The notes: a model not told the origin generated them from the letters alone. Shown: positions 13,717 to 64,000, numbered from the stretch's first letter. The stretch is 64,000 nt of DNA from Selaginella moellendorffii (GCF_000143415.4 NW_003314271.1:372001-436000), one strand, 5' to 3'. Translations and numbers: made by a program.

Positions 13717-13802
13717 AGAAATCTAGGGCTCGAGGGTTTAGGGTTTAAGGGTAAAGGCAATGTCCCAAAATCTAGGGTTCTAGCTCGTGAGAAAGGGGGA
13801 GA
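13717..13802. promoter_or_regulatory. 86-bp spacer between divergent ATGs carrying telo-box motifs
   Basis: 'gagggtttagggtttaaggg' and 'ctagggtt' (AAACCCTA-like on the minus strand) lie between the ATGs at 13716(-) and 13803(+). Confidence 0.6.
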
Positions 13803-26105: not shown

Positions 26106-26202
26106 GTTTGATTCAGATTGTGGTTTTTGCTTTTCTTTTAGCTCATTTTGATTATTTGATTGCCTTTGTCTTTTTCCCCCTTTCTTTTCTTTCTTCTTGC
26201 CA

Positions 26203-42800: not shown

Positions 42801-43109
42801 TTCCGGACGAGAGCTTTACTTCTTTTCCGTGCCGCTTGTACGAGCATGGTCGCGTCACTTCGAACTTGTTTTCGTTTGGCTTGTACAGGCGTGAGCGATC
42901 AATTCTTATATCTTATGGACAGGAAAGCTCTTCTTGTCTGAAATTGTTCAAGAATTGATTGAAGAATTGGTGATCCTAGCTCACAAGCGAGGAAACGGCT
43001 GTTATCTTGCAGAAATGAATCAAGACTCAAGAACACCACAGGTTCTAATATTTCTGAATTGTGTTTGCGCTCTTCTTTCACTCTTCCTCTCATAAAGTAT
43101 GGGATTGAC

Positions 43110-43260
43110 CAAAATACACGAATATTTTGAATATATTCAACGTAACCTTCAAATATTTTTTATCTGGAAAGAATACCTTGGCACTTGACGGAAACGAATA
43201 TTTTGAATATAACCTTCAAGAATACCTTGGCACGTGATGGAACAATAAACTAAGTCCAGA
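43110..43260 (+). promoter_or_regulatory. Internally repeated GGPPS-like promoter with G-box CACGTG (43231)
   Basis: Repeated 'gaatattttgaatat...ccttcaa...aataccttggcac' units. Copy 2 has two G-boxes (52557, 52634). Confidence 0.4.
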
Positions 43261-43314
43261 CTTGTGTTGGCACGAAAGGTCACAGCATCAAAGCTAAGCA
43301 GGAAAGTTTCAAGC

Positions 43315-44304
43315 ATGAACCAGCAGATCAATGGCCTCGTCCTCCCTCCGAGAATCCACTACCGCCGCGTCGCCGCCAGCGCCGCCCCCGGCACCACCAC
43401 CACCACCAAGTCCAGCAAGTTCGACTACGATCTCTATGTCAAGACCAAGCGCGAGGCCGTGTCCATCTCCCTCCACCGCGCTTTCCCCCCGCCGCTCAAG
43501 CAGCCCGAGACGCTCAAGATGCACGACGCAATGCGCTACGCGGTGGGCGGCGGGCGGCGGACGTGCCCCATCGCTTGCATCGCAGCGTGCGAGCTGGTGG
43601 GCGGCACCCAGGACGACGCCATGCCGGGAGCCTGCGCGCTTGAGATGATCAAGGCCAGCTTCTGCGTCCAGGACGATCTCCCGTCCATTGACGACTCGGA
43701 GCTCCGCCACGGCAAGCCCACCGTCCACCGCGCGTTTGGCATACCCACGGCGCTCTTCGCGGGAACCGCGCTGCTCGCGCTCGGCTTCGAGCACCTGGCG
43801 GCGCGCTACAGCGGCGATACGGCGGCGAGGATGGTGGCGGAGGTGGGCCGGGCTATCGGGTCAACGGGTCTGCTGGCCGGTCAAGCCGTGGACCTGGGCA
43901 TCGAGAACCCGGACCGCGGGGTAGAGCTGGAGACGCTCGAGTTCGTCCACCTCCACAAGACGTCGGCGCTGCTCGAGGCGTCGTTGGTGGCCGGGGCCAT
44001 TGCTGGTGGCGCGAGCGAGCAGGAGATTGAGGCGCTGAGAGCGTATGGACGGGTGACCGGGCTTCTCTACCAGATCGTGGATGATGTCGCGGACGCTACC
44101 AAGACAATGGAGGAGCTCGGGAAGATCCCGGGCCAGGACGCGATGGCGGGCAAGAGCACGTATTCCACCATCTTGGGAGTGGACAAGTCGAGGGAGATGG
44201 TTGGGCAGCTGTTGGTGGAGGCCAAGGAACGATTGGGTGTGTTCGAGGAGACCAAGGCACTGCCGCTGATCCACCTAGCCGATCACTTTGCTAATTGGGC
44301 TTGA
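43315..44304 (+). CDS. Intronless GGPP-synthase-like trans-prenyltransferase with atypical active site
   Basis: FARM 'DDLPSIDD', SARM 'YQIVDDVAD', 'GQAVDL', 'HLHKT', CxxxC 'CIAAC', 'GKSTY'. Short Ala/Thr/Ser-rich N-terminal extension. Confidence 0.9.
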   Translation: MNQQINGLVLPPRIHYRRVAASAAPGTTTTTKSSKFDYDLYVKTKREAVSISLHRAFPPPLKQPETLKMHDAMRYAVGGGRRTCPIACIAACELVGGTQDDAMPGACALEMIKASFCVQDDLPSIDDSELRHGKPTVHRAFGIPTALFAGTALLALGFEHLAARYSGDTAARMVAEVGRAIGSTGLLAGQAVDLGIENPDRGVELETLEFVHLHKTSALLEASLVAGAIAGGASEQEIEALRAYGRVTGLLYQIVDDVADATKTMEELGKIPGQDAMAGKSTYSTILGVDKSREMVGQLLVEAKERLGVFEETKALPLIHLADHFANWA

Positions 44305-44395
44305 GACTTTAGTTTGGTATAATGACTATTGTTGTTTCTTATTATTATTATTATTATGAGTTTAACACAACAATAATAGAATCAACTGGAAATAA

Positions 44396-46439
44396 TTATT
44401 TGAAGCTCAGAAGTTGTGTGGCTTTTTTCTGGATAGTCTCCCAAGCCTTAATAACATGCTTAACCTCAGTTAAAGTACCTCCAACGGCCATTCGCAACAA
44501 AAAATCCCCCGAGAGCACCTGTTTTTCAGGTGTTTGGGTCATTACATGGTGGCATGATGCATTTAGAAACTTACTGTATGTGTGATGAATGTTGTTTCGT
44601 TTGAATTCACTGCGTGAAGTAAATTTTCATTGAGAGCATTTACGGAACTGGCCTCAATTGCTTTGAGCCTGAAGCAAACAAGTCCAAATCTGCAAGGCAC
44701 TAAAACCTGCAATACAAACTTCTTTGCTATACTGAATTCAAATTTAAGAAGTTGAATTTCACGAACCTCGAAACGTTTGTCTTCAGTGACTTTTCTCTCG
44801 AAAAGCCTAGCTAGGCAAGTATGATGTATGATATAGTTTTTAAGTTTGGAGGAGCCATAAAGTCGCATGACAAGCCACAACTTCAGAGCTCTAGAAAGAA
44901 ACAGACCATGATATGTGCCAACAATTAAAACATAAACAAAGCAACAACCTGAATCTTTTTCCGAGTGATACTTGCCAGTCCTTGAAATCCACGACTTCCC
45001 CCGCCTCAGATGCCTGTACTAAATAAACAAAATGATAATTAATTAATTACTCCACACCTTGTTACGAAGATATTCTGACTGGACCGAAAGCGTTGAAGTC
45101 AAGGTCCTTGCATTCTTTAATATAACACAAGTAAGAAGTGGGAATAACTTAGCAACAATACCTTAACCCATAATACAGAGCAATCTAGATTTGTCAAGAG
45201 CCATTTGTGAGTTCCAACATTGAGTGAATCAGCCTTCTCGATGCCATCCAAGAAATGCCTATACTCGGGGCATATGCACGCACTGCCTCCGTATGCGGCA
45301 TCTACGTGAAACCACATTTCATATTCCTGGCAAATGGATCGATTATCAAAGCAAGCAACAAGCAAACAAAGTTGGAAATGCCAGATTACCTGAGCAATTT
45401 CACCAAGGTCTAGCAATGGATCTACAGCGGCGGAAGACGTGGTACCAAGCTGCAATAAGAGCGTTATGTAAGGATGCAGAAGACCCACGTATCACAGTAC
45501 CGTGGCACCCAGATACAGTGGTATGACATCGTCCCCGCCTTCCTCAATAGCTCCACGCAAGAGAGCAGGCGAGAGCGCGTAGTTTGTTTCCTTGGTTGTG
45601 GGCAGCACCACCAGCTTGATGCCCGCAATCTTACAGGCCTTGTGCAAGCACATGTGAGTCTGATCCGACGTGTACGCTCGGAGTCTGCGCACCACGTCTT
45701 CCTCTACAAGCCCATTTGGCGTGTGCTTCGAAATGGCTCGACTCCGGGCGGCACACAGTGTGACGAGCATTCCCTCGGTCGCTGAGCCTTGGATGACGCC
45801 CCCGCCTTTGCCTAGAGAGTAAAACAAGCAATACGTAAGGCGAGACGTGGCAGTGTGTGATAGACCTGATGATCCCGAGAGGAAGGAGTCTGGCAGCTCG
45901 AGAAGCTTTCCCAACCAGTTTACGACAATAATCTCCAGCTCCGTGGCCGCGGGTGAGGCGATCCAGCTGAAGTTGACGGTATTGAAGCCGGAGATGAGGA
46001 TCTCGGCTAGAATGCCGGCGGTGCTACTGTTTGCCGGATAGTAGCTGAAGAAGCTCGGGCTCTGCCAGTGCGTGAGGCCGGGAATGATGATGTTGCTCAC
46101 ATCTAAACAGCCACATTGCCAGATTTCATGAGAGATTCGATGATATAGACGGGAGTACCAACCAGCAAGAATGTCATCGAAGGACTCTGGATCTTGAGGT
46201 GCAAATGCGGGGATTAAATCATTCAAGTATCCTGGCTGCACACAGTAGTACAAGTGAGTAGTGACGAGGGAGGAGGAACAGGAGAGAAACGTGAAACATA
46301 CACTAACTTGGCTTCTGACCGGAAACTTCTCAATGTGGCGATAGTAGTCGGCCACAAAATCCACCATTCGGTGGGCATGCTCCCGAAACTCCTCAGAGTC
46401 CATCAACTTGAGGCCGGGTGGTGGTGCCGATTCGCCCAT
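44396..46439 (-). CDS. Divergent aromatic amino acid decarboxylase AADC2a (appears intact)
   Basis: '[20 protein letters not shown]', 'SPAATELE', 'HVDAAYGG', '[17 protein letters not shown]', 'VQSEYLRNK', '[14 protein letters not shown]'. Stop TAA at 44396-98. Confidence 0.92.
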
Positions 46440-46598
46440 CTCTGAGCTCTCGGGCTATGGCTCCTCAATCAATAATCTTCCTCCCACGTTTTCTATCTGG
46501 ATCGTATGTTTAGTAAGAGAGTTTCTTTAATCTTTGGCAAGTTTCTTTTACTACCTAGGTATATTTCTAAATTCTATCAAGTCTTGGTGAGAGTGGCA
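46440..46598. promoter_or_regulatory. 159-bp putative bidirectional promoter between AADC2 and methyltransferase A (copy at 55871-56029)
   Basis: Divergent ATGs at 46439(-) and 46599(+). Confidence 0.6.
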
Positions 46599-47807
46599 AT
46601 GGCTGTGGACAACCAGGAGCTTGAAGTGTTTTACGATGAAGGATGTGTGGTGTATGAAGCAGTGTGGGGTGAGCATATGCATTCGGGTTACTTCGATGCT
46701 GGCAACACTCGCGACTTTCGAGCGGCACAAATCCGAATGCTCGAGGAGCTCTTGGCCTGGGCAGGAGTACCGGGTAAGCATTTCAATCGCTCCGAGACAC
46801 ACCCTTTTACAATGTGTGCATCTAGACGACGAGCAAAGCCGGCCAAGGAACATTCTGGATGTGGGCTGTGGATTTGGAGGAACATCTCGGTATCTATCCA
46901 ATAAGTACTCCGCGAATGTCACAGGAATAGCATTGAGTAAGTACGAGATTGGCAGAGCTAGAGCCATTGCAAAGGCAGAGGGTGTTTGTGACAAGGTATT
47001 GCTCTACCATCGCACAAATCAAAAGCATCTTCTTGGTTCATTCAGGTGGCATTTCAAGTGGCAGATGCTTTGAGTCTGCCCTTCGAAGACAACCAGTATG
47101 ATCTGGTTTGGTGCATGGAGTGTGCCGATCATATTGCAGATAAACTCAAGGTAAAACACTCTCATAGAGTTTGAGCTTCATATGTTACTATTTCTTCGTC
47201 TGAGCAGCTAATGCAAGAGATGACGCGTGTGGCCAAGCCCGGAGGCTGGGTTGTGCTCACAGGATGGTGTCACCGAGAGTTTACCCATGGCGAAACTTCA
47301 CTCAAGAAGCATGAGCTGGTCATAGATTTAATCAAGACTGAAAACGTGAGTTAAATTATATTTTAATATATGTGATTTGTGTTTGCAGAAGATCCTGGAC
47401 AAAGTCCGTGCAGCATATCTTCTTCCACCTTGGTGCCAGACATCTGATTACAAAGTTATAGCAATCGACGCGGGTTTGCAAGTGTGTGCTGTAATCTCAA
47501 TATAATATTTAGAGTTTACTGTGATTAATGTTGCCAGGGGGTAAAAGTGGAAGACTGGACACGGCACATGCTTCCGTTTTGGGGTCTGCTCACTGCAGAG
47601 ATCTTTACCTTGAGAGGCGCATTCAAGATTTTGACATCAGGTAATACAAAACTTTCACAAGAGTCTTACCTCTCTAATGAGTAAACAGGATGGGCACATC
47701 TTCGTGCAAGTATATCCTTGGCATATCACTTCTCCTACATGGACAAAGGATTCAAGACTGGCGTTTTCAAGTATGCTGTGGTTATGGGAAAGAAAGATAA
47801 GAAGTAG
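46599..47807 (+). CDS. gamma-tocopherol-methyltransferase-like SAM methyltransferase, type A copy 1 (7 exons, no transit peptide)
   Basis: 'FYDEGCVVYEAVWGEHMHSGYF', 'ILDVGCGFGGTSRYL', 'FQVADALSLPFEDNQYDLVWCME', 'RVAKPGG..WCHR', 'LPPWC', 'EDWT..MLPFW'. Ends GKKDKK*. Confidence 0.9.
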
Positions 47808-47937
47808 TTCCAGTAGCAGGAGACTTGCCTCCTTTATTATCTGTTTTGATTCATAAAGGTCGAACAATTGACACAGCAAATCATCAATAATAATTCATTA
47901 TTTCTTACACTGGATCGCCAGCGTCTTTGTTCTTGCA

Positions 47938-48270
47938 ATGGCCAGCGAGATCGAAGAGATTTATGATGAGGGATGCGTGGTGTACGAGGCCGTGTGGGGC
48001 GAGCATATGCACTCGGGCTACTTTGAGGCGGGCAAGCCTGGGGACTTTCGAGTGGCACAAGTCCGAATGATCGAGGAGGTCCTCTCTTGGGCCGGAGTAC
48101 CAAGTAAGCTTCCCTCTCTATTCTATTACAATCTCCTAGATGATGAGCAAAGCCGGCCTCGAGACATACTGGACGTGGGCTGCGGTTTTGGGGGAACTTC
48201 TCGATATCTGTCCAAGAAGTACTCGGCAAATGTGAAAGGAATAGCACTGAGCGATTACGAGATCGCCAGC
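47938..48270 (+). pseudogene. Truncated type-C methyltransferase (exon 2 joined to 3' flank)
   Basis: Matches the 58387 gene up to 'gagatcgccag', then jumps to sequence resembling 59610 onward. Confidence 0.85.
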
Positions 48271-50064
48271 TCCATTGCTCCTGTTTTTCTTTCTATATAA
48301 AAATATCTTTGTGAAGTCCAAATTTATGAAGGTATGCAGACCTCATTGTGTTTACAATCCACTTGTGCATGGGGCATGGAGCATGGGATCAGTTAACCAA
48401 TTAGTTACTTAACGTTCATCGCCCACCTTCTCTCACTCTTGTGGTCTTATAAAATATATGACAATAATATTTGTAAGTATAGAATACCATATATTGAACA
48501 ATGCTACTCTATCGCATTATATACAATTGTTGAAATTCATTTCTAAATCTTTTAGTCGGTATCCCAAAACCGTGTAAACAATGAATGAATATACTGGGTC
48601 TTGCAGCTTCCAGCTGGAGCTGGGTTGGTATTCGTAATTTGTATGAAAGGGAATGGGGCACCATACCTAATCTGCATTCAGTGTATATTAGATTTTAACT
48701 TTGAAAATGGTGCTAGATATCTTTATTTTTATTGAAGAAAGTCTTATATTTATTTATTCATATTCAAGTTGGTTCATGAGATGCTCGTGGGACACAAGTG
48801 TATATTGTCAATTGTCATTGGGGAAGGAGGGACAGAGTGCCTGGAGGAGCAGGCCCTGTCGCCCCTGGCTCCCATGAGGTCCGGGAGGTTGTGTGCGTTG
48901 AAAACGAGCAGGGTGCTTGGCAGTCGTAGACGACGTGTCTTTACGTCTGCTTTGCATCTCGCGGGGTGACTGGTGTATGTCGTCGTCCGAGCTCGACGAG
49001 CAACAAGTGACAAGCAATCTCGGACTTTTACATAGTGAATACCATCTAACAAGGAGAAACAGCGGCAAAACTAGGGGCGATGGTAAGATACTTCATGTTT
49101 GACCGAAAGGATTAAAATACATTGGAAACAGACTTATGCAGCGTACAATATCTTTTGAGAATCTCAACCCCACTGACGAGAATCGAGCAATGGTGGCTGA
49201 AAGTACTTCACGTGCTCTTGGGCCTCTTCAAGCTGCTCCGGTTGACAAGAATGGTGGCCTTGTGTGTGTTCTACTGGAGCTCTACGCTTGAATTATCTAC
49301 ATGACTTTGTTTTCGGTGCCCGTCAAGCGTGTGCGAGAACGACTGACGCTGTGGAAGTTAGTGTTTCTGACTTAAAAACATTTTGCCAAAGATTTCTTGA
49401 CAGTGGAGCCCTTTGACAGATTGGTCACAAGCTTTATCAAATTACGATAGAGCCAACACAAATAAAAAAAGTTGTTGTCCAATCACATCCAGTAGTGCCT
49501 GCCATTCCCCATGCCTCCTGCTATGGTGGCTGTGACGGTGATGAACAGCAAACAATCCTCCTAGCCAGCGCAAGCTTGTGGTGTCTCGAGGTGCCCCGTG
49601 AAGCATGTGTGTGACCGATTAACACTCATTCACAAGGGCACGGCACCACAAGATTCAAAACAGCATTAGATAGAGAGAAAAAATTTGCTGGCCAGAGATG
49701 CAAAAGACTCATGAAAGTGGAAAACTTACTGGTGACAAGCTTGATCGACGTAAGATAGAGCCAACACAATTCCAATCGGGCAGGACGTGGAACGTGCGAT
49801 GGATTAGAGAGTGACCTCCTTGTGGTGTTGCGCCAACACAATCAAGACAATTCTCGTCCAGTGCCAATTCACATACCACACGCTTCCTGCGAGCTGTATT
49901 CTTGGTGGCTGTGATGTTGGTGAAGTGGTTACAATCCTCTTTACTAGTCCAAGCTTAAAGTTTGAAATAAAAATGCTGCATTTGTGACAAAAACAATTGT
50001 CATTACTAGCATCCATTAGAAAATATTGATTGTTGAAAATTAAGTTGGAATAAATAATTGTTGT

Positions 50065-50098
50065 GTCAGGATTCGAACCTGCGCAGGCAAGCCCACAT
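50065..50098 (-). other. tRNA-Ser-like 3' half fragment (variable arm plus T arm), not a full tRNA
   Basis: Minus strand reads 'atgtgggcttgcctgcgcaggttcgaatcctg', with B-box GTTCGAATCC and a Ser-type long variable arm. There is no D arm or anticodon. Confidence 0.55.
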
Positions 50099-50119
50099 CC
50101 CCACACTTCGGGTATTCCA

Positions 50120-51085
50120 CCACTTGGGTGGCACACTTGTTCAGAAGTTCAAGCTGGTGATACTTGAAGGGCTCCACTCTGTTGCCTATGAGATGCAAAT
50201 AGAGCTGTAAGTTATGCAGTGCCTGATTCTCAGGTTTGTGCTTCAGATAAGTCAAGCCTGTGTGGACAACTTCCAGCACCACCCCAACGTGAGATACGTA
50301 GCCCAGAGTGCTTCCCGGAAGCTTGGTAACCACATCCAAGGGATTAACCACGGTGAGGACTCGGAGGCTCTGCAACCTTTCTGCCGCCACCTTGAACGCA
50401 TGGTTGCCACCTTGACGACCACCTAGGGCAAGTGCGGTCACCGGGATCAGCTTACCATTGGGACATGTCGTAGGCACACAGGATTGCGAGCGAAGCTCCA
50501 AAACTATGCCCGGCCACAGTGATGCTCAATTTTTCATCAATGAGGCTCCTGAGCGTGGAAACTATCTGATCACGGGCACAGAGGTGTTTCCAAACTCCTC
50601 GCCTGGATAAGAACGAGTGTAAAGTGTGGATACATGGTCGGACACCAATACGGGCGACGAGCTTCCGGCCGCCACTGCTAGTTTCACTGTATTCAGCCGA
50701 GGGAGGGGCAAGAGCGAGTCGATCTCCGACCATTCCCGAGTGAGCTCCATGCCCCGAAACGCAGGGAGGATGTCTCTTCGTCCCAGCCTCAAGCTTTCTT
50801 CATCATGGCCAGGTAGCCAGACCTGGCCATATGATCTGTATCTTTGGTGCTGCCATAGATGTACTTGTGTATCGTGTAGCCGGTGTTGCCCATCTGGAGC
50901 TTGTGGAATAGCTGTGACTTGCCATGAATGCACAGGCCATACCAGCGAGATGCTTGACTTCGTTGAATCCATCCACCACGCATTAGATGTGCTGGCCGTA
51001 GCGGATCAGCTCCTGGCAGAGAGTTTCGTCCATGGGATTCCCAAGCATGCCTTTCCAGAATGTCTGGCTTTGGACTATCCATTTC
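50120..51085 (-). pseudogene. Class-3 lipase pseudogene, inverted paralogue of the 63226 gene
   Basis: 'QTFWKGMLGNPMDETLCQELIRYGQ', 'SITVAGHSFGASLA', 'VVNPLDVVTKLPG', 'HNLQLYLH'. Several frameshifts and deletions. Confidence 0.88.
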
Positions 51086-51377
51086 CCTGTTAGAGATGGT
51101 GCCGAGAAATGAAGAGACAAAGACTTCGAGTATGATAGTACTTTTAGGTTTGCCAAATTGCCATGTCCGTATTCGATCGAAAAGCTGAAGGTATGCCCAC
51201 TGTCAGTGCAGCGGGCGAGAAGCTTTAGTCCATGCTTCCTGCTGGACAAGCTTCTTTTGTTCGTACATCATGGCAGAAAAACTTTTGAAAACGTTTAAAG
51301 AACTTACAGAAATTCGGCAGGTCTAGGCTATTGGGAACAAAAAAGAATAAAGAATAAAAAAACTAAAAGAAAGATCG

Positions 51378-51596
51378 AGCTGCAAAGGCATCCAAGCATC
51401 CAGAGTGCGTTCATGACTTTTTGTCATGGGTCCTTGAGTTTGCATAGGGCAGAAGTTGGTGTGCCAAAGTTGCCATTGCTACTCTCCAACTTTGCATTTA
51501 GTCCTGCTTCGAGTTACAAGCACAGCCCCAGGATGCACGTTATCATCGACGCACCTCGAGGCATCCAGCTGGTTGTCCACAAACTCAGCGAATGAT
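51378..51596 (+). pseudogene. 3'-terminal remnant of the P450 gene, inverted
   Basis: Degenerate match to the last exon of 60833..62568, ending 'SPRMHVIIDAPRGIQLVVHKLSE*'. Confidence 0.88.
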
Positions 51597-52735
51597 AAAA
51601 CACTGCTGGAACGTTCTTGTTTACTCTCGAGAAAGACAATCAATGAGGGAACACATAAACGTACTGCTAGAAGTTAAATGAAGAAATTCGACCAAGCGTG
51701 CGTAAACTGCAGGAGTGACTACAGCTCTCTTAAGATGCTCACAAGGTGTAAATTAGCTATTTCCAGGTTACAGCTCAAAAGGTAGTTTCTCGTATTGACA
51801 TGGCTGCAAGTAATAATTTCTTGTCACACGAGCATCTCATGACCAGCTCTGTTCAAAAGGTTAAATGGTTCGCCAGGGGTAACTTCTGCAGAAAAATCAC
51901 AGTGACGTTTCTCCACAAATGCTTCTACAAATCGTTGTACTTAAATGTCATTTCGAACTTCTTGCCTTCCACCCCAGTGTCGTCATGAGTAGCCCTATCA
52001 CCTTTGTCGCGAGCCTGATACCAGCGTCAATGACTAACACCAACAAGTGACCCGTTTGTGTACCGATAAGCTGAATGTACCATAATCCATGAGATATCCA
52101 ACTATCCTTGAAGAGCTAAACAAATCATAATTAATTAAAACGACATAAAAACATGTTCAGGAAATGGTGGATCAAGGTACTCACATCTGAAGAAACTGTA
52201 TGCATCAGTTTCGAGTAAGCCATGGAGTGCACCCATTAACTATATTACATTTATATATTTACTGTGTATATTTATATATTTACAATATGAAGATGACCGA
52301 TCTGTTCTGTTTAGCTGCAAGAGGAAGAACAACCATGAAAACATACAAAGAAAAAGTTTTCGACTTACATGCCATAGGATTGGAGAGAGCAGCGGGGCGA
52401 TGGGAGCTGGACCAATTCTTGTAACCACAGGTTCTAATATTTCTCAATTGTGTTTGCGCTCTTCTTTCACTCTTAGTACGGGATTGATCAAAATACACGA
52501 ATATTTTGAATCTATTCAACGTAACCTTCAAATATTTTTTATCTGGCATACCTTGGCACGTGATGGAACAATAACTTGACCAAAATACATGAACATTTTG
52601 AATATAACCTTCAAATATTCAAGAATACCTTGGCACGTGATGGAACAATAAACTAAGTCCAGACTTGTCTTGTTTGTGCTGGCACGAAAGGTCAGTCACT
52701 ACTCAGCATCAAAGCTAAGCAGGAACGTTTCAAGC

Positions 52736-53694
52736 ATGAACCAGCAGGTCAATGGCGTCGTCCTCCCTCCGAGGATCCACTACCGCCGCGTTGCCGCTAG
52801 CGCCGCCCCCGGCACCACCACCACCACCAAGCCCAGCAAGTTTGACTACGATCTCTATGTCAAGACCAAGCGCGAGGCCGTGTCCATCTCCCTCCACTCG
52901 GTTTTCTCCCCGCCGCTCAAGCAGCCCGAGACGCTCAAGATGCACGAGGCAGTGCGCTACGCGGTGGGCGGCGGGCGGCGGACGTGCCCCATCGCTTGCA
53001 TCGAGGCGTGCGAGCTGGTGGGAGGCACCTAGGACGACGCCATGCCGGGAGCCTGCGCGCTTGAGATGATCAAGGCCAGCTTCTGCGTCCAGGACGATCT
53101 CCCGTCCATCGACGACTCGGAGCTCCGCCACGGCAAGCCCACCGTCCACCGCGCGTTTGGCATCCCCACGGCGCTCTTTGCGAGCACCGCGCTGCTCGCG
53201 CTCGGCTTCGAGCACCTGGCGGCGCGGGCGAGGATGGTGGCGGAGGTGAGCCGGGCTATCGGGTCAACGGGTCTGCTGGCCGGTCAAGAACCCGGACCGC
53301 GCGGTGGAGCTGGAGACGCTCGGCCTCGAGCAGCGCCGACGTCTTGTGGAGGTGGACGAACCGGGGCCATTGCTGGTGGCGCGAGCGAGCAGGAGATTGA
53401 GGCGCTGAGAGCGTATGGACGGGTGACCGGGCTTCTCTACCAGATCATGGATGATGTCACGGATGCTACCAAGACAATGGAGGAGCTCGGGAAGATCCCG
53501 GCCAGGACGCGATGGCGGGCTTAACGAGGATCCATTGGAGAGCAAGTCTAGCTCCAATAGCGTATATCAAAGCCATCTTGGGCGTGGACAAGTCGAGGGA
53601 GATGGTTGGGCAGCTCTTGGTGGAGGCCAAGGAACGATTGGGTGTGTTCGAGGAGACCAAGGCACTGCCTCTGATCCGCCGATCACTTTGCTAA
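52736..53694 (+). pseudogene. GGPPS-like pseudogene
   Basis: CAG>TAG at 53030-53032, plus internal deletions, frameshifts and a foreign insert near 53520. Confidence 0.92.
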
Positions 53695-53811
53695 TTAGGC
53701 TGTTTTTGGAGACTATATTACTATTGTTGTTGTTGTTGTCGTTATTATTATTATTATTATTATTATTAAGTTTAAGTTTAGCACAACAATAATAAAATCA
53801 ACTGGAAATAA

Positions 53812-55870
53812 TCATTTGGAGCTCAGAAGTAGTGTGGCTTTTTTCTGGATAGTTTCCCAAGCCTTAATAACATGCTTGGCCTCAGTTAAAGTACCTCCAA
53901 CGGCCATTCGCAACAAAAAATCTCCTGAGAGCACCTGTTTTTCAGGTGTTTAGATCATTACATGGTGGCATGATTCATTTAGAAACTTACTGTATGTGTA
54001 ATGAATGTTGTTTCATTTGAATTCACTGCGTGGAGTAAATTTTCATTGAGAGCATTTACAGAACTGGCCTCAATTGCTTTGAGTCTGAAGCAAACAAGTC
54101 CAAATCTGCAAGGCACTAAAACCTGCAATACAAACTATTTTGTTATACTGAATTCAAATTAAAGAAGTTGAATTTCACGAACCTCGAAACGTTTGTCTTC
54201 ACTGACTTTTCTCTCGAAAAGCCTAGCTAGGCAAGCATGGTGTATGATATAGTTTTTAAGTTTGGAGGAGCCATAAAGTCGCATGACAAGCCACAACTTC
54301 AGAGATCTAGAAAAATACAAACCAATTAGATATGTGCCAACAATTAAAACATAAACAAAGCAACAACCTGAATCTTTTGCCAAGTGATACTTGCCAGTCC
54401 TTGAAATCCACCACTTCCCCCGCCTCAGATGCCTGTACTAAATAAACAAAATTACAATTAACTAATATTTACTCCACACCTTGTTACGAAGATATTCTGA
54501 CTGGACCGAAAGCGTTGAAGTCAAGGTTCTTGCATTCTTTAATATAACACAATATACTTTAGTAAGAAGTTGGAATGACTTAGCAACAATACCTTAACCC
54601 ATAATACAGAGCAATCTAGATTTGTCAAGAGCCATTTGTGAGTTCCAACATTGAGTGAATCAGCCTTCTCGATGCCATCCAAGAAATGCCTATACTCGGG
54701 GCATATGCACGCACTGCCTCCGTATGCGGCATCTACGTGAAACCACATTCCATATTCCTGGCAAATGGATCAATTATCAAAGCAAGCAACAAGCAAACAA
54801 AGTTGGAAATGCCAGATTACCTGAGCAATTTCACCAAGGTCTAGCAATGGATCTACAGCGGCGGAAGACGTGGTACCAAGCTGCAATAAGAGCGTTATGT
54901 AAGGATGCAGAAGACCCACGTATCACAGTACCGTGGCACCCAGATACAGTGGTATGACATCGTCCCCGCCTTCCTCAATAGCTCCACGCAAGAGAGCAGG
55001 CGAGAGCGCGTAGTTTGTTTCCTTGGTTGTGGGCAGCACCACCAGCTTGATGCCCGCAATCTTACAGGCCTTGTGCAAGCACATGTGAGTCTGATCCGAC
55101 GTGTACGCTCGGAGTCTGCGCACCACGTCTTCCTCTACAAGCCCATTTGGCGTGTGCTTCGAAATGGCTCGACTCCGGGCGGCACACAGTGTGACGAGCA
55201 TTCCCTCGGTCGCTGAGCCTTGGATGACGCCCCCGCCTTCGCCTAGAGAGTAAAACAAGCAATACGTAAAGCGAGACTTGGCAGTGTGTGATAGACCTGA
55301 TGATCCCGAGAGGAAGGAGTCTGGCAGCTCGAGAAGCTTTCCCAGCCAGTTTACGACAATAATCTCCAGCTCCGTGGCCGCGGGTGAGGCGATCCAGCTG
55401 AAGTTGACGGTATTGAAGCCGGAGATGAGGATCTCGGCTAGAATGCCGGCGGTGCTACTGTTTGCCGGATAGTAGCTGAAGAAGCTCGGGCTCTGCCAGT
55501 GCGTGAGGCCGGGAATGATGATGTTGCTCACATCTAAACAGCCACATTGCCAGATTTCATGAGAGATTCGATGATATAGACGGGAGTACCAACCAGCAAG
55601 AATGTCATCGAAGGACTCTGGATCTTGAGGTGCAAATGCGGGGATTAAATCATTCAAGTATCCTGGCTGCACACAGTAGTACAAGTGAGTAGTGACGAGG
55701 GAGGAGGAACAGGAGAGAAACGTGAAACATACACTAACTTGGCTTCTGACCGGAAACTTCTCAATGTGGCGATAGTAGTCGGCCACAAAATCCACCATTC
55801 GGTGGGCATGCTCCCGAAACTCCTCAGAGTCCATCAACTTGAGGCCGGGTGGTGGTGCCGATTCGCCCAT
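53812..55870 (-). CDS. Divergent aromatic amino acid decarboxylase AADC2b (appears intact)
   Basis: Same exons and motifs as AADC2a. Stop TGA at 53812-14. Confidence 0.9.
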
Positions 55871-56029
55871 CTCTGAGCTCTCGGGCTATGGCTCCTCAAT
55901 CAATAATCTTCCTCCCACGTTTTCTATCTGGATCGTATGTTTAGTAAGAGAGTTTCTTTAATCTTTGGCAAGTTTCTTTTACTACCTAGGTATATTTCTA
56001 AATTCTATCAAGTCTTGGTGAGAGTGGCA

Positions 56030-57238
56030 ATGGCTGTGGACAACCAGGAGCTTGAAGTGTTTTACGATGAAGGATGTGTGGTGTATGAAGCAGTGTGGGG
56101 TGAGCATATGCATTCGGGTTACTTCGATGCTGGCAACACTCGCGACTTTCGAGCGGCACAAATCCGAATGCTCGAGGAGCTCTTGGCCTGGGCAGGAGTA
56201 CCGGGTAAGCATTTCAATCGCTCCGAGACACACCCTTTTACAATGTGTGCATCTAGACGACGAGCAAAGCCGGCCAAGGAACATTCTGGATGTGGGCTGT
56301 GGATTTGGAGGAACATCTCGGTATCTATCCAATAAGTACTCCGCGAATGTCACAGGAATAGCATTGAGTAAGTACGAGATTGGCAGAGCTAGAGCCATTG
56401 CAAAGGCAGAGGGTGTTTGTGACAAGGTATTGCTCTACCATCGCACAAATCAAAAGCATCTTCTTGGTTCATTCAGGTGGCATTTCAAGTGGCAGATGCT
56501 TTGAGTCTGCCCTTCGAAGACAACCAGTATGATCTGGTTTGGTGCATGGAGTGTGCCGATCATATTGCAGATAAACTCAAGGTAAAACACTCTCATAGAG
56601 TTTGAGCTTCATATGTTACTATTTCTTCGTCTGAGCAGCTAATGCAAGAGATGACGCGTGTGGCCAAGCCCGGAGGCTGGGTTGTGCTCACAGGATGGTG
56701 TCACCGAGAGTTTACCCATGGCGAAACTTCACTCAAGAAGCATGAGCTGGTCATAGATTTAATCAAGACTGAAAACGTGAGTTAAATTATATTTTAATAT
56801 ATGTGATTTGTGTTTGCAGAAGATCCTGGACAAAGTCCGTGCAGCATATCTTCTTCCACCTTGGTGCCAGACATCTGATTACAAAGTTATAGCAATCGAC
56901 GCGGGTTTGCAAGTGTGTGCTGTAATCTCAATATAATATTTAGAGTTTACTGTGATTAATGTTGCCAGGGGGTAAAAGTGGAAGACTGGACACGGCACAT
57001 GCTTCCGTTTTGGGGTCTGCTCACTGCAGAGATCTTTACCTTGAGAGGCGCATTCAAGATTTTGACATCAGGTAATACAAAACTTTCACAAGAGTCTTAC
57101 CTCTCTAATGAGTAAACAGGATGGGCACATCTTCGTGCAAGTATATCCTTGGCATATCACTTCTCCTACATGGACAAAGGATTCAAGACTGGCGTTTTCA
57201 AGTATGCTGTGGTTATGGGAAAGAAAGATAAGAAGTAG
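56030..57238 (+). CDS. gamma-TMT-like methyltransferase, type A copy 2
   Basis: No difference from 46599..47807 seen by eye. Confidence 0.88.
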
Positions 57239-57368
57239 TTCCAGTAGCAGGAGACTTGCCTCCTTTATTATCTGTTTTGATTCATAAAGGTCGAACAATT
57301 GACACAGCAAATCATCAATAATAATTCATTATTTCTTACACTGGATCGCCAGCGTCTTTGTTCTTGCA

Positions 57369-58173
57369 ATGGCCAGCGAGATCGAAGAGATTTATGATGA
57401 GGGATGCGTGGTGTACGAGGCCGTGTGGGGCGAGCATATGCACTCGGGCTACTTTGAGGCGGGCAAGCCTGGGGACTTTCGAGTGGCACAAGTCCGAATG
57501 ATCGAGGAGGTCCTCTCTTGGGCCGGAGTACCAAGTAAGCTTCCCTCTCTATTCTATTACAATCTCCTAGATGATGAGCAAAGCCGGCCTCGAGACATAC
57601 TGGACGTGGGCTGCGGTTTTGGGGGAACTTCTCGATATCTGTCCAAGAAGTACTCGGCAAATGTGAAAGGAATAGCACTGAGCGATTACGAGATCGCCAG
57701 CTCCATTGCTCCTGTTTTTCTTTCTATTTTAATATATGTGATTTGTGTTTGCAGAAGATCCTAGACAAAGTCCGTGCAGCATATCTTCTTCCACCTTGGT
57801 GCCAGACATCTGAATACAAAGTTGTAGCAATCGACTCGGGTTTGCAGGTGTGTGTTATAATTTCAATATATTATCTAGAATTTATTGTGATTAATGTTGC
57901 CAGGGGGTAAAAGTGGAAGACTGGACACAGCACATGCTTCCGTTTTGGGGTCTGCTCACTGCAGAAATCTTTACCTTGAGAGGCGCATTCAAGATTTTGA
58001 CATCAGGTAATACAAAACTTTTGCAAGAGTCTTACCTCTCTAATGAGTAAACAGGATGGGCACATCTTCGTGCAAGTATATCCTTGGCATATCACTTCTC
58101 CTACATGGACAAAGGATTCAAGACTGGCATTTTCAAGTATGCTGTGGTCATGGGAAAGAAAGGTAAGAATTAG
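57369..58173 (+). pseudogene. Chimeric methyltransferase: truncated type-C 5' part fused to a diverged type-A 3' half
   Basis: Junction near 57727. Exons 3-4 are missing and the last three exons are A-like, ending GKKGKN*. Confidence 0.8.
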
Positions 58174-58386
58174 TTCCAGTAGCAAGAGACTTGCCTCCTA
58201 ACTCCAAACTTATTCTCTGTTGTGATTCATAAAGGTCGATCACAGGTGACAATTGACAAAGCAATAATTTAATCATCAATAATAATTCATGATTTCTTAC
58301 ACTAGGAAGGAATTTTAGCGTGAGTCCTAGCCGCGGGGGAGGATCTTGCGGCAGTTCCCGTAAGCGCCAGTGTCTGTGTTCTTGCA

Positions 58387-59598
58387 ATGGCCAGCGAGAT
58401 TGAAGAGTTTTATGATGAGGGATGCGTGGTGTACGAGGCCGTGTGGGGCGAGCATATGCACTCGGGCTACTTTGAGGCGGGCAAGCCTGGGGACTTTCGA
58501 GTGGCACAAGTCCGAATGATCGAGGAGGTCCTCTCTTGGGCCGGAGTACCAAGTAAGCTTTTGATCATGGTATCCCTCTCTATTCTATTACAATCTCCTA
58601 GATGATGAGCAAAGCCGGCCTCGAGACATACTGGACGTGGGCTGCGGTTTTGGGGGAACTTCTCGATATCTGTCCAAGAAGTACTCGGCAAATGTGAAAG
58701 GAATAGCACTGAGCGATTACGAGATCGCCAGAGCCAAAGCCATCGCGAGGGCGGAAGGAGTTTCAGACAAGGTAGATTCCACTCCGTTGTTTGGGGCTGT
58801 TTCTAACACTTAACGAACAGGTGACGTTCCAAGTAGCAAATGCACTGAATCAACCGTTCGAAGACGGCCAGTTTGATCTCGTCTGGTGCATGGAATGCGC
58901 AGTGCACATTGAGGACAAACTCAAGGTAGAAGAATTCATAATCTTTTCATCTGGGTTTGTTTAAATCCCGCACGCGATTGCAGCTTGTGCAAGAGATGGC
59001 ACGCGTGACCAAGCCCGGAGGTCGGGTGGTGCTTGTGAGCTGGTGCCACAGAGAACTGAAGCCTGGAGAAACTTCACTCAAGAAGGATGAGCAAGTAAGC
59101 GAAGTTCCTAGATATTTCTTGATCCCTTAAAAAGATTGTCATAACATATGGCTTCAGGCGCTCTTGGATAAGATCTGTGCTGCTTACTTCTTTCCACCCT
59201 GGTGCGCCACTTCAGAGTACGAAACATTAGCATGCAATGCGGGTTTGCAAGTAAGACTTCGGGTTCTTCATCGACTCTATGGCTGATCTTATGTATTATC
59301 TGATCTGTAGGAAGTAAAGGTGGAAGATTGGACTCGACACATGCTTCCATTCTGGGGAATGCTCACGGGCCAGCTCTTTACATTGGGAGGTGCATTCAAG
59401 CTCCTGACATCAGGTAAGTAAAGATCTTGTTACGTGTCGCAGCTTTAGTTTCTCGTTTTTATTTCTTGCTTTCCAGGGTGGGCACATATGCGGACAAGTC
59501 TGTCATTGGCTTACCACTTCTTCTACATGGACAAAGGCTTCAAGAATGGCACCTTCAAGTATGCCGTGGTGGTGGGAAAGAAAGAGCTGTTATCATAA
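58387..59598 (+). CDS. gamma-TMT-like methyltransferase, type C (7 exons, intact, no transit peptide)
   Basis: 'MASEIEEFYDEGCVVYEAVWGEHMHSGYF', 'LDVGCGFGG', 'FQVANALNQPFEDGQFDLVWCME', 'RVTKPGGRVVLVSWCHR', 'LLDKICAAYFFPPWC'. Stop TAA at 59596-98. Confidence 0.9.
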
Positions 59599-60832
59599 GG
59601 GAGCATTGGATTCCCCATTGCTTCTGTTTTTCTCCAAATTTATGAAGGTATGCAATCCACTTGGAGCATGGAATCAGTTAACCAATTAGTTACTTTTCAC
59701 GTCCATCGCCCACCTTCTCCATCTCCCTGCGGAACCATATCATTCTTGAAGTATCTTACCATCCCCACCGGTGTCGTGTTAACCTTGTTCTTGTTAGATG
59801 GTAAAAAACTTACTACTATGTAAAACTTATATAAACATGAAGTTAACATTTGAAATAGTCCGAGATGGCTTGTCACCCGTTGCTCGTCAAGCTCGGACGA
59901 CGACGTACACCAGCGAGATGCAAAGCAGACGTAGAGACACGTCGCCAGCAGCCCCATGCTCGACTTCAACGCACACGACCTCCCGGACCTCATGGGAGCC
60001 TGGAGCGACAGGCCCTGCTCCTCCAGGCACTCTGTCCCTCCTTCCCCAATGACAACTGACGACACCACCCTCACTAAAGAACGACGTCTCTTATAATTCC
60101 TTTATTTTTTGTTTAAAAAAGCGTGTATAGCCCGCAAGAGCACATGCTCCTGCGGGCTAAAGAAGACTATATACGCATGATCTATCTATGTATTTATCTT
60201 GCGGCCCACGAGCATCTCATGAACCAACTCGAATATGAATAAATACATATACTTGACCAACTTCAATAAAAACCATTTTCAATGGCATCTGTCACTCAGG
60301 TATGATACCCCATTCCCTTTCATACACTATAATTACGAATACCCCCAGCTGGGAGCTGCAAGACTCAATATATTCATTCTTTCATATATTGTTTACATGG
60401 TTTTGAAGCAAGAGACCAAAAGATTTAGAAATGAATTTCAACAATGCATTGCTCAATATAGATTAAGTATAGTATTCTATAACTACAAATATCACCTGTA
60501 TTATTAAAGTCATATAAGAATAAAATCTTTTATAAGACCTGTTTGACCAAAAGGATTAAAATACATATAATATCTAACCCCATGAGATGCTCGTGGGACA
60601 AGAAATTAAAGACTACCTTAAAAAAGGTTTTGTGCTGTAACCTGGAAATAAGAGAGCTGTAGTCACTCCTGCAGTTTACGCACGCTCGGTAGAATTTCTT
60701 CACTTTGACATTCACAACACTGAGCAAATCAACCGCAAGGTATGGACAACTTCTAGCAATACGTTTATGTATTCCCTCATTGATTGTCTTTCTCGAGAGT
60801 AAACAAGCTGAGAACGTTCCAGCTGTGTTTTA

Positions 60833-62568
60833 CTATTCGCTGAGTTTGTGGACAACCAGTTGGATGCCTCGAGGTGCGTCGATGATAACGTGCATCCTGG
60901 GGCTGTGCCTGTAACTCGAAGCAGGACTAAATGCAAAGTTGGAGAGCAGCGTAGCAATGGCAACTTTGGCCTCTAACAACGCCAACGTCTGCCCTATGCA
61001 AACCCGAGGACCCATGACAAAAGGCATGTACGCACTCGGGTGCTTGGATGCCTTTGCAGCTCCTTGCGAAAAGCGCTCCGGGTTGAACTCATTTGCATCG
61101 GCTCCCCACAGCTCTGGGTCGTGGTGGAGCCAGAGAAGTGGAATGGTGACTTGCGTGCCCTCAGGAACTTTGATCCCTCCCAAAACCGTGTCTTTGGAGG
61201 CTACTCTCTGGACTTCAGAGATTGCTGGATAGAGCCTCAGTGTCTCGTAAAGAATCATCCCCACCTATAAGTTGAACTTTAAAGAGCATTCGAAAAGGCT
61301 GTGAGAAACCTACCAGCTTGAGCTTGTCAAGAGCGCCAACCTGGGAGTTCTCCTTGAAGTGTTCTTGGACCTCGGCTCGGGCTCGGTTTTGCCAGTCGGG
61401 GTTGAGGGCGAGCATAAAAAGAGTCCACCCGAGTAAGCTGCCGGTTGTTTCGTGCCCGGCAAGGAAGAACGTCTTGCATTCGTCCACCACCACCTTGTCA
61501 CTGAATCCTGCAGACTTGTCGCTCTCCTCCAGGATCAAACCAAGCAGATCATCTCCATAGTTGCCGGAGCTTCTTCTCCGTTCATGGATCAAGCTCATCA
61601 CGGTCCTGTCAATCTCTCTCTTCACCTTCCAAATCTTACGATTGAGAGGGCACGGATAGTAACTGGCATTATAGGATTGTGTGTCAGCAGACTTTCGATT
61701 GGTGGAAAATGCATACCTGAAGAGTGGAAGCCAAAAGTAGCTCTGGGCCTCGAGTGCTAAATCACCCAGCACTGTGAGCCCACGAAAGACTTGCTCACCT
61801 TTTTCATAGTTGGCACCAAAGGCAACGTGAGAAATGAGGTCTGCGGCGAGCTTCTTCAAGTCGTGCGCCACTTCTAGCTCGGCTTGTCCGTGAGGAACAC
61901 AAGTTTTCCATTTGGCGACCAGTTTCTCAGAACACGCTCGAATCCTTGCATACATTGCCTAGAAATGGAATCCGTGATCTCTATCTAGATTGCAGAGAAA
62001 ACAAGTCAAATCTATGCCTACCTTCAACTTGAGCGTATGAAATGCTGGAGAAAGCACATTTCTCCGCTGAGACCATTCCTGGCCGCCTTCCAGCCCGAGG
62101 ACTCCATGGCCTACAACGTCAATCACGACCTGAACTTGATCGCTCGACTTGGGGAAGTTTTCAAACTGCCTGGACAGGATCTCGCGAGCACAGTCGGGAT
62201 CGAAGAATGTGACATCGGGAACATCCAGGGACCTTGTCAAGTATGGCTTTCCTGCGGCACATTTTCTCTGTAGAGAGGGAAGTCTGTATAGAAAGCACGG
62301 CCTTACCATACTTGGACGACCACAAGACAACTTCGGGCGTGACATGAGCGACAATGTCGTGACAGGTTTCCATCACCTTGCCCTGGTTCTCAATCCTCAT
62401 CTGGTATTGCTGGCCACTGTTGCCAGCCAAGAACTTGGGCGGCGGTCCCTTGAGCCCCTGCTGCTTTAGTATCCCCTCTATTCTCCTCGAGCGCCTCCAT
62501 GGTCGCGCAAGCCTCCAGAGCAGCGCCGCGCAAATGCCCACCACACCAAGCACAAGCAACGCAGCCAT
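60833..62568 (-). CDS. Cytochrome P450, CYP72 clan (5 exons, appears intact)
   Basis: N-terminal anchor, 'QGLKGPPPKFLAGN', 'DECKTFFLAGHETT', 'ETLRLYP', 'HHDPELWGADANEFNPERF', heme motif 'FVMGPRVCIG'. The five-exon layout is typical of the CYP72 clan. Confidence 0.93.
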
Positions 62569-62572
62569 AGAG

Positions 62573-62595
62573 CTCTCTCTCTCTCTCTCTCTCTC
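62573..62595. repeat. (CT/GA)n microsatellite directly upstream of the P450 ATG
   Basis: ctctctctct... run. Confidence 0.85.
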
Positions 62596-63225
62596 CGTTT
62601 CGGCTTAATGCTAGGTTAGCAATGAATCTTGCTCTTAATCCAGCCCCGCATTTGATGCGAGTAGAGCTAAGTTCGCTTGGTTTCTCTCTCTTCTTGATCT
62701 TTCTTTTTTTCTTTTTTGTTCCCAGACAAGGAAGCAGGAGTGTAAGTTCTTTAACCCTTTTCAAAAATGATGTACGAAGAACAAAAGAAGCTTGTCCATG
62801 GACCAAAGTTTCTGGCCCGCTACGAGGACGAACTCGCTCGCGAGGGGTGCACACAAACCAAGAGACAGAGGGACGTGCCCACGAAGCCAACAAGAGGCTC
62901 GAAAAGGTGATCAGTTTCTTTCTAGCCATCTACGTGACCGGGGGTGTGTCCGAGCTCGGCCCTGAAGGTTCAATTCTAGTAGAAATATTTCGAAGGTCCG
63001 GCGTCTGAAGCATTCCCATCGGATGACTGTTGTCTCCCGCACCACAATGGCTCTTAAGCTGCGATCGAATGCCCGACCTTTTGCCACGACGCTCTTCTTT
63101 TCAAAGCATGGCAAACTCTGAAAAGCAACACGTCCTGAATTATTGTTTAATTTACATTAGGTACTCGAGCAAGAAAATTCAACCCTGCTTTAGATCGATA
63201 CCTAGATCTAGGTGGCTTGGATACA

Positions 63226-64000
63226 ATGGCCAATCGACTCGCATCATCTCTGGCAAGCAAATGGAAGCTAGTCCAAGGCCAGACATTCTGGAAAGGCATG
63301 CTTGGGAATCCCATGGACGAAACTCTCTGCCAGGAGCTGATCCGCTACGGCCAGCTAATCCAATGCGTGGTGGATGGATTCAACGAAGTCAAGGCATCTC
63401 GCTGGTATGGCCTGTGCATTCACGGCAAGTCACAGCTATTCCACAAGCTCCAGATGGGCAACACCGGCTACACGATCCACAAGTACATCTATGGCAGCAC
63501 CAGAGATCGCCCCCGTCTAATCACAGGTACTGGTACCACCAGGGAGCCCCACACTGGATGGTCTGGCTATCTTGCCATGTCGAACGACCAAGAAAGCTTG
63601 AGATTGGGACGAAGAGACATCCTCCTTGCGTTTCGGGGCATGGAGCTCACTCGGGAGTGGTCGGAGATCGACTCACTCTTGCCCCTTCCTCGGCTGTATC
63701 CAGCGAAACCGGCAGTGGCGGCCGGAAGCTCGTCGCCCGTGTTGGTGTCCGACCATGTAGCCTCACTCTACACTCACTGCTATCCAGGCGAGGAGTTTGG
63801 AAGCACTTGTGTCCGGGATCAGATTGTTTCCACGCTCAGGGGCCTCATCGACGCAAACAGGGACGAAGAGCTGAGCATCACGGTGGCCGGGCATAGCTTG
63901 GGAGGTGCGCTTGCAACCCTGTGTGCCTACGACATTGTCAACGAGAGTGTCAACGCAGCTCCCAATGGTAAGATGATCCCGGTGACCGCATTTGTCATTG
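63226..64000 (+). CDS. Class-3 lipase / phospholipase A1 (DAD1/PLA1-II-like), intronless so far, runs off the window
   Basis: Open frame from ATG 63226: 'WKLVQGQTFWKGMLGNPMD', 'ELIRYG', 'WSGYLAMS', 'RLGRRDILLAFRG', 'SITVAGHSLGGALATLCAYD'. Confidence 0.88.
   Translation, partial: MANRLASSLASKWKLVQGQTFWKGMLGNPMDETLCQELIRYGQLIQCVVDGFNEVKASRWYGLCIHGKSQLFHKLQMGNTGYTIHKYIYGSTRDRPRLITGTGTTREPHTGWSGYLAMSNDQESLRLGRRDILLAFRGMELTREWSEIDSLLPLPRLYPAKPAVAAGSSSPVLVSDHVASLYTHCYPGEEFGSTCVRDQIVSTLRGLIDANRDEELSITVAGHSLGGALATLCAYDIVNESVNAAPNGKMIPVTAFVI

Follow-up and report, generated by a model that had tools for sequence, protein, structure and literature searches.

Diverged enzyme genes at a partly duplicated locus of the spikemoss Selaginella moellendorffii: a candidate cluster for pyrrolidinoindoline alkaloids

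Do the unrelated enzyme genes packed into 21 kb of a Selaginella moellendorffii scaffold form a working biosynthetic gene cluster, and, if so, what might it make? The window analyzed here (the whole stretch, 64,000 nucleotides; GCF_000143415.4 NW_003314271.1:372001-436000) carries, from position 43315 to its end, genes for a polyprenyl synthase resembling geranylgeranyl diphosphate synthase (GGPPS-like), an aromatic amino acid decarboxylase (AADC), methyltransferases (MT1 and MT2) resembling gamma-tocopherol methyltransferase (gamma-TMT, or VTE4), a cytochrome P450 and a class-3 lipase. A sequence-only reading of the window had proposed an amine-alkaloid cluster and pointed to hordenine-type compounds from the genus. 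So far, biosynthetic gene clusters in plants have come mainly from seed plants, and most of them are terpenoid. Co-located, non-homologous specialized-metabolism genes outside seed plants are exemplified by the momilactone cluster of the moss Calohypnum plumiforme; such clusters are terpenoid, unlike the alkaloid cluster proposed here, and we know of no alkaloid cluster described for any lycophyte. Searches found no prior description of the gene identifiers, of a Selaginella alkaloid cluster, or of pseudophrynaminol or selaginellic acid biosynthesis; most subscription journals lay outside these searches, so absence is unproven.

We report that the locus is very probably a genuine, functional, lineage-specific cluster of specialized-metabolism genes. 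Its interpretation as an amine-alkaloid cluster is plausible, the grounds being where the genes lie, how far their sequences have diverged, the selection on them, and the fit to the plant's chemistry. The product named here, pyrrolidinoindolines (selaginellic acid, N8,N8-dimethylpseudophrynaminol, and relatives) made by the route set out below, is a tentative assignment from sequence, to which we give somewhat less than an even chance.

Gene content and maintenance on two haplotypes

The window scaffold is GL377575.1 (assembly GCA_000143415.2), and an allelic copy of the locus lies on GL377579.1 (haplotype 2 below); the assembly contains both haplotypes. All five enzyme families were found at their predicted places with Pfam: polyprenyl_synt at 43264-44304 (+), Pyridoxal_deC on minus-strand exons at 44563-46439, SAM-methyltransferase/CMAS at 46621-47073 and 47938-48300, p450 at 60833-61955 (-), and PF01764 (Lipase_3) for the lipase. 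Public gene calls on GL377575.1 give the same genes with no others interspersed, in agreement with the earlier claim of five families in 21 kb and no housekeeping gene between them. The intact genes are as follows.

43315-44304 (+), GGPPS-like copy 1, intact, intronless, 329 amino acids (aa) (P0126)
44396-46439 (-), AADC copy 1, XP_024528822.1 / P0122 (TYDC1-1), intact, 11 exons, 494 aa; exact exon chain, 494/494 residues
46599-47807 (+), MT1 copy 1, intact, 7 exons, 292 aa; homology-guided model
53812-55870 (-), AADC copy 2, XP_024528821.1 / P0002 (TYDC2-1), intact, 11 exons, 494 aa
56030-57238 (+), MT1 copy 2, protein identical to copy 1; homology-guided model
58387-59598 (+), MT2, intact, 7 exons, 289 aa; homology-guided model
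60833-62568 (-), P450, intact, 5 exons, 504 aa, with N-terminal membrane anchor and complete heme loop
63226-64000 (+), lipase A, class-3 phospholipase A1 (PLA1)-II type, intact, intronless, 402 aa, ending at 64434, past the window

On GL377579.1, the locus is a single tidy six-gene set of 11.9 kb in the order GGPPS-like, AADC, MT1, MT2, P450, lipase, with spacers along that order of 99, 142, 178, 2144, and 870 bp and no intervening gene call. Gene content and order are common to both haplotypes, with at least one intact copy of each of the six genes, and on both GGPPS-like and AADC stand tail to tail across a 99-bp gap. The two head-to-head pairs noticed earlier are borne out: the ATG codons of AADC (46439, -) and MT1 (46599, +) are 159 bp apart, and those of P450 (62568, -) and lipase A (63226, +) are 657 bp apart.

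An operational criterion for plant clusters asks for at least three adjacent, non-homologous enzyme families with no unrelated genes between them and for genes that are intact and maintained. Both haplotypes show the former arrangement, and each gene has an intact copy, with dN/dS (nonsynonymous over synonymous divergence) of 0.12-0.25. Between the window and haplotype 2, allelic dN/dS was 0.16 for GGPPS-like, 0.12-0.16 for AADC, 0.19 for MT1, 0.12 for MT2, 0.25 for P450, and 0.25 for the lipase (allelic dS, 0.04-0.14), and introns were no more conserved than synonymous sites. All intact cluster genes are under purifying selection between the haplotypes. As for expression, Logan had no transcript contigs for any of the cluster proteins, and the cluster gene identifiers were absent from the supplements of the S. 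moellendorffii expression-atlas preprint.

Diverged paralogues of primary-metabolism enzymes

Judged by sequence comparison, GGPPS-like, AADC, and the MTs are fast-evolved, strongly diverged paralogues of primary-metabolism enzymes, without a close relative in the public collections searched. GGPPS-like matches PF00348 at 142.8 bits and has both Asp-rich motifs (DDLPSID and DDVAD). Its best solved relatives in the PDB are plastid GGPPS and geranyl diphosphate synthase (GPPS) large subunits (E about 1e-85), and its best match outside S. moellendorffii in a collection of 5.8 billion proteins is just 52% identical. Compared with 118 homologues, it departs from the consensus in 20 of the 87 columns that are conserved at 95% or more; the changes include K81R, H113K, R132H, and R328W at 100%-consensus positions and K274Q at a 99% position. 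By analogy with structures of farnesyl diphosphate synthase (FPPS) and GGPPS, several of these altered basic residues would hold the isopentenyl diphosphate (IPP) diphosphate and the closing C-terminal tail. A Phe stands at -4 of the first Asp motif. Scores on NCBIfam models were 271 bits for CrtE (cut-off, 460) and 227 for FPPsyn (cut-off, 275), against 438-457 and 348-358 bits, respectively, for four canonical plant GGPPS; the stem branch in the tree is 1.96 substitutions per site, and only about 33 residues precede the conserved core, compared with 60-100 in plastid enzymes.

GGPPS-like shares its fold family, the DDxxD motifs, and CxxxC with plant GGPPS and the subunits of heteromeric GPPS-GGPPS (PDB 5e8l, 3kra; E about 1e-85 to Arabidopsis GGPPS11), and it differs from them in the replacement of invariant K, H, R, K, and C-terminal R residues, in having no long transit peptide, in its long branch, and in its location in a cluster of amine enzymes. 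From these residues, we infer that it has kept the Mg2+ and allylic-diphosphate machinery but lost the IPP site. By sequence, the protein labeled "prenyltransferase-like" earlier is a plastid-type GGPPS paralogue, not a member of the aromatic prenyltransferase family. A further paralogue, 80% identical and with the same residue changes, was found on GL377684.1 (L003 8092-11829), flanked by two cis-prenyltransferase (PF01255) genes; the three genes may make up a further small cluster for isoprenoids.

The two AADC copies differ at 8 residues and 23 coding sites (dS 0.045). AADC is 45-49% identical to other AADCs, with at most 49% to any non-self protein, and its close matches are found only in S. 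moellendorffii; E values against solved plant AADCs range from 1e-176 to 1e-161. The pyridoxal phosphate-binding Lys (HKW) is present, as is the catalytic-loop Tyr (SEYLRNK, aligned with NPEYLKNK of CrtDC), where AtPAAS has Phe. Tyr in this loop marks a true decarboxylase and Phe an aldehyde synthase (6eew, 6eei). The position for indole/phenol selectivity is occupied by Gly (VSLGKRF). Databases label the protein "tyrosine decarboxylase 1," an automatic name that is no evidence of substrate. A third AADC, of canonical type (...TTPEYLRNK, ...IPLGRRFR), lies at window positions 17502-19616 (-), 25 kb to the left, with pentatricopeptide repeat (PPR) genes, transposons, and other genes between it and the cluster.

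MT1 and MT2 share 76% identity, and their identity to the plant's canonical VTE4 (P0466) is 49-52%. That VTE4 lies on another scaffold, so the cluster MTs are extra paralogues. Both proteins are some 55 residues shorter than VTE4, beginning right at the conserved core, and are therefore without a transit peptide; they have neither of the marks of VTE4, orthology and a plastid transit peptide. In the tree, they form a separate, fully supported clade with a stem of 4.1 substitutions per site. The tree does not resolve where this clade attaches among land-plant VTE4s, and a monophyletic grouping with Selaginella VTE4 is compatible with the data (p-AU 0.18). Among 1.84 billion cluster representatives, one protein only fell below E 1e-30, namely the locus's own chimeric model, and no solved gamma-TMT relative was found among structures. 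Recruitment of the VTE4 family into alkaloid metabolism is known from Apocynaceae, in the form of gamma-TMT-like N-methyltransferases. The spikemoss MTs resemble that case as diverged, additional members of the family in a plant that also has a canonical VTE4, and they differ from it in their independent lycophyte origin and separate clade; N-methylation is putative here.

P450 (introns 62306-62252, 62021-61959, 61716-61663, and 61313-61265) has its nearest solved relatives in CYP3A and P450 BM3 rather than in plant A-type P450s, and an Atlas search matched generic P450 clusters only. A 3-intron model of 522 aa was rejected, as the extra 54 nt have GT..AG ends and contain a stop codon in haplotype 2. 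The terminal methyl of prenyl side chains is hydroxylated by CYP735A (the cytokinin trans-hydroxylase) and by other methyl oxidases of the CYP72 clan. To reach the pseudophrynaminol alcohol and selaginellic acid from a 3a-prenyl group, a reaction of this type is needed; for the spikemoss P450, the comparisons show a non-A type. The lipase has a GHSLG serine motif (E 6e-55 to PLA1 7x0d and 5e-45 to Arabidopsis PLA1-IIgamma, 2yij) and at least three local copies or relics; it looks like an ordinary PLA1-II (DAD1-like) enzyme with no evident role in the pathway.

Proposed alkaloid route and competing explanations

As reported from Wang et al. 2009 in PMC8156211 and PMC5385659, the S. moellendorffii alkaloids comprise selaginellic acid, 5-hydroxy-N8,N8-dimethylpseudophrynaminol, and Phe conjugates, and in the accounts given there (PMC8156211, PMC5385659) they are N8,N8-dimethyl, C3a-prenyl-derived pyrrolidinoindolines; the title of a reference in PMC13107220 gives pseudophrynamines as prenyl pyrrolo[2,3-b]indoles. 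Since the alkaloids of this species are prenylated pyrrolidinoindolines, tryptophan, not tyrosine, is indicated as the precursor. To form them, tryptophan must be decarboxylated and the amine must gain two N-methyl groups; indole C3 must receive a prenyl group, with closure of the ring, and one methyl of that prenyl group must be oxidized to the alcohol and the acid. The core genes supply one candidate per required step, with two MTs for two methyl groups. The order that had been suggested from the gene families, from amino acid to arylethylamine to mono- and di-N-methyl amine and then through prenylation and oxidation, remains the reading that accounts for these genes most economically.

In the proposed route, a cytosolic AADC would convert tryptophan to tryptamine, and MT1 and MT2, derived from gamma-TMT, would add two N-methyl groups to give N,N-dimethyltryptamine. 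The GGPPS-derived enzyme would ionize dimethylallyl diphosphate (DMAPP), indole C3 replacing the IPP double bond as the nucleophile, and the tertiary amine would close on C2 to form a quaternary N8,N8-dimethyl-3a-prenyl pyrrolidinoindoline; with N,N-dimethyltryptamine as the acceptor, ring closure would directly yield the unusual quaternary N8,N8-dimethyl center. P450 could oxidize the terminal prenyl methyl to the alcohol and then to the acid.

The boldest form of this proposal is that a soluble, cytosolic descendant of plastid GGPPS acts as an indole C3 prenyltransferase, turning N,N-dimethyltryptamine and DMAPP into a quaternary pyrrolidinoindoline, within the first known lycophyte alkaloid cluster and alongside independently recruited tocopherol-type N-methyltransferases; on the sequences, we regard it as a rather doubtful prediction. 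Plant aromatic prenyltransferases known so far are mainly membrane-bound UbiA-type enzymes, and to our knowledge no prenyl-diphosphate synthase turned indole prenyltransferase is known in plants. If true, the proposal would establish a new plant aromatic prenyltransferase class, convergent with ComQ of bacteria, and would explain the selaginellic acid alkaloids genetically; genes would be named for the S. moellendorffii pyrrolidinoindolines, one of which has reported antiplatelet activity, and tocopherol methyltransferases would have been recruited into amine methylation a second time, independently. It concerns four or five small genes, each with intact copies, and is directly testable.

ComQ of Bacillus is a homologue of farnesyl diphosphate (FPP) and geranylgeranyl diphosphate synthases that prenylates Trp of ComX at indole C3 and forms a tricyclic pyrroloindoline core (PMC5331326). 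It resembles the role proposed for GGPPS-like in that it performs no IPP elongation and needs the first Asp-rich motif; it differs in its peptide substrate, its geranyl diphosphate (GPP) or FPP donor, and its degenerate second motif, NDxxx/GDxxx (PMC5331326), where GGPPS-like has an intact DDVAD. In sequence, GGPPS-like is a close offshoot of plastid-type plant GGPPS, outside the ComQ family, and a shared activity is proposed only. The fungal subrubine (sub) cluster of Aspergillus terreus/Penicillium (PMC13107220, 2026), like this locus, combines a tryptophan decarboxylase, N-methyltransferases, an indole prenyltransferase, and P450s; it makes tryptamine-derived prenylated polycyclic indole alkaloids, and the paper discusses pyrrolidinoindoline formation (PMC13107220). 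It differs in being fungal and in its dimethylallyltryptophan synthase (DMATS; ABBA fold) prenyltransferase, its methyltransferases and other enzymes from unrelated families, and its nonribosomal peptide synthetase and ene-reductase steps (PMC13107220), and the likeness is one of convergent logic, not homology.

Several points weigh against the pyrrolidinoindoline route. In ComQ, the second Asp motif is degenerate, and a DDxxD at that place is described as unsuitable (PMC5331326), yet GGPPS-like retains it as DDVAD. The 80% paralogue sits between cis-prenyltransferases with no amine genes beside it, so the subfamily may serve isoprenoid chemistry. Gly at the AADC selectivity position is usual in basal-clade plant AADCs, including Phe and Tyr users; Trp use is therefore permitted, not predicted, and this residue was dropped as evidence for tryptophan. 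Placement of P450 in the CYP72 clan, as the sequence-only reading had it, is compatible with the comparisons, not proven. The cluster contains no 5-hydroxylase and no phenylalanine-conjugating enzyme, and the lipase, together with a coclaurine N-methyltransferase (CNMT)-like MT and a UDP-glycosyltransferase (UGT) to its right, has no assigned role in the route.

Linkage is tightest among AADC, MT1, and MT2 (142- to 178-bp spacers and a shared 159-bp divergent promoter region), and these genes, perhaps with the CNMT-like MT, could form an amine-methylation module making N-methylated arylethylamines, with GGPPS-like, P450, and the lipase as unrelated neighbors. P450 lies 2.1 kb further away, the lipase is an ordinary PLA1 present in multiple local copies, and the GGPPS-like paralogue has a different, isoprenoid-type neighborhood. 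Such a module is possible, although we lean against it: GGPPS-like is 99 bp from AADC on both haplotypes and was co-duplicated with AADC and MT1, purifying selection on it persists despite the loss of residues for the ancestral reaction, and the S. moellendorffii alkaloids, as presented in PMC8156211, need exactly such a prenyl transfer. More remote is a route from tyrosine through tyramine to N-methyltyramine and hordenine with later decoration, for example, glycosylation by the nearby UGT, which is intact on both haplotypes. Hordenine and N-methyltyramine compounds, including glycosides, come from S. doederleinii (review PMC3650682), so that the mention of such compounds stands for the genus; for S. 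moellendorffii, the same review lists hydroxycinnamoyl polyamines only (PMC3650682), and hordenine-type compounds are not among the alkaloids given for this species there or in the S. moellendorffii account of PMC8156211. The database name "tyrosine decarboxylase 1" would fit tyrosine, but it is automatic; that literature has no prenylated hordenine derivative, and GGPPS-like and P450 would be left without a role. We judge the tyrosine route unlikely. What persists of the earlier proposal is thus the amine-alkaloid cluster itself, as a compact set of selectively maintained, diverged paralogues on both haplotypes, and not its hordenine product.

It could also be asked whether there is a working cluster at all. 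On the window haplotype, pieces that are pseudogenes or chimeras number at least five, the spacer is inverted and scrambled, the CNMT-like MT is frameshifted, and 3.1 kb shared by the duplicate units at 99-100% identity could be an assembly collapse; the locus might be a rearrangement hotspot, and the apparent cluster a by-product of segmental duplication or mis-assembly whose genes are no longer used together. Against this stand the clean single-copy set of the second haplotype, an intact copy of every core gene at dN/dS 0.12-0.25, the 23 coding differences between the AADC copies, and the identity of only 94-96% in the left part of the duplicate, which make decay or artefact improbable. A maintained cluster, with the pyrrolidinoindoline route as its tentative chemistry, is the reading carried forward here.

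Tandem duplicate and flanking sequence

Self-comparison of the window showed that 43035-48306 is repeated at 52424-57737, a 9.4-kb tandem duplication: the window haplotype carries a partly decayed tandem duplicate of the cluster's left half. The duplicate is restricted to this haplotype and is lacking from GL377579.1, whose gene set is the allelic partner of window copy 1 (95.6% identity over 5.2 kb); GGPPS-like was co-duplicated with AADC and MT1. Much of the 21 kb is tandem duplicate, and cluster size is therefore inflated relative to haplotype 2. The five-family layout described earlier holds for the families, and it must be corrected for the pseudogenes and chimeras in the stretch, namely GGPPS-like copy 2, a lipase copy, a piece of P450, and two pieces of MT. 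The decayed pieces and the spacer are as follows.

47938-48290 (+), MT2 fragment, exons 1-2 only, broken off at the duplication breakpoint (tblastn, repeat comparison)
48300-52420 (no strand), scrambled spacer between the two units (blastn, tblastn)
50130-51105, lipase pseudogene in the spacer, inverted, with frameshifts and stops (tblastn)
51326-51732, P450 3' fragment in the spacer (blastn)
52736-53694 (+), GGPPS-like copy 2, pseudogene; indels versus copy 1 of -18, -20, -13, -1, +35, +1, and -5 nt
57369-58173 (+), chimeric MT remnant, MT2 exons 1-2 joined to MT1-like 3' exons

Five of the seven indels in GGPPS-like copy 2 are frame-breaking, and the spacer also contains pieces that match the haplotype 2 region upstream of the cluster (blastn). 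The duplicates are 94-96% identical in their left part and, starting at about 45130, 99-100%; the near-identical stretch spans 3.1 kb (45130-48274 versus 54561-57705), and the adjoining 1.8 kb has the lower value. This near-identity needs either gene conversion or assembly collapse. A simple assembly echo would account neither for the 23 coding differences between the AADC copies nor for the lower identity (94-96%) of the left part. Two RefSeq models were built across these remnants: XP_024529091.1 (156 aa) is a model of the MT2/MT1 chimera at 57369-58173, and XP_024528824.1 (279 aa), from 43315 to about 53524, fuses GGPPS-like copy 1 with the pseudogene copy 9 kb away.

Extension to the right for further members such as a UGT, as had been suggested, was productive. 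Lipase A is followed by a lipase fragment, the CNMT-family MT, the UGT, and then BTB and RNase II genes, housekeeping genes that are probably the right cluster border. The CNMT-like MT is 347 aa and intact on haplotype 2 (L005 13157-14603); on the window haplotype (L004, about 13338-14853, some 2.4-4.1 kb beyond the window end), it has lost single nucleotides, and one of these deletions alters its last ~14 residues. Among solved structures, it is closest to coclaurine, tetrahydroprotoberberine, and pavine N-methyltransferases. The UGT (457 aa; L004 15127-16500 and L005 15020-16393) lies 4 kb right of the lipase and is intact on both haplotypes.

To the left of the cluster, a UGT C-terminal fragment lies beside Helitron-type open reading frames (ORFs), and both fragment ends repeat the same 30-residue peptide; this fragment, at 39 kb, was rejected as a copy of the right-hand UGT at just 39% identity. 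The Helitron-type ORFs (1003 and 406 aa) are at window positions 34101-38483 (-) and 39098-39901 (-), and retrotransposon gag/protease-like ORFs are at 26138-27811.

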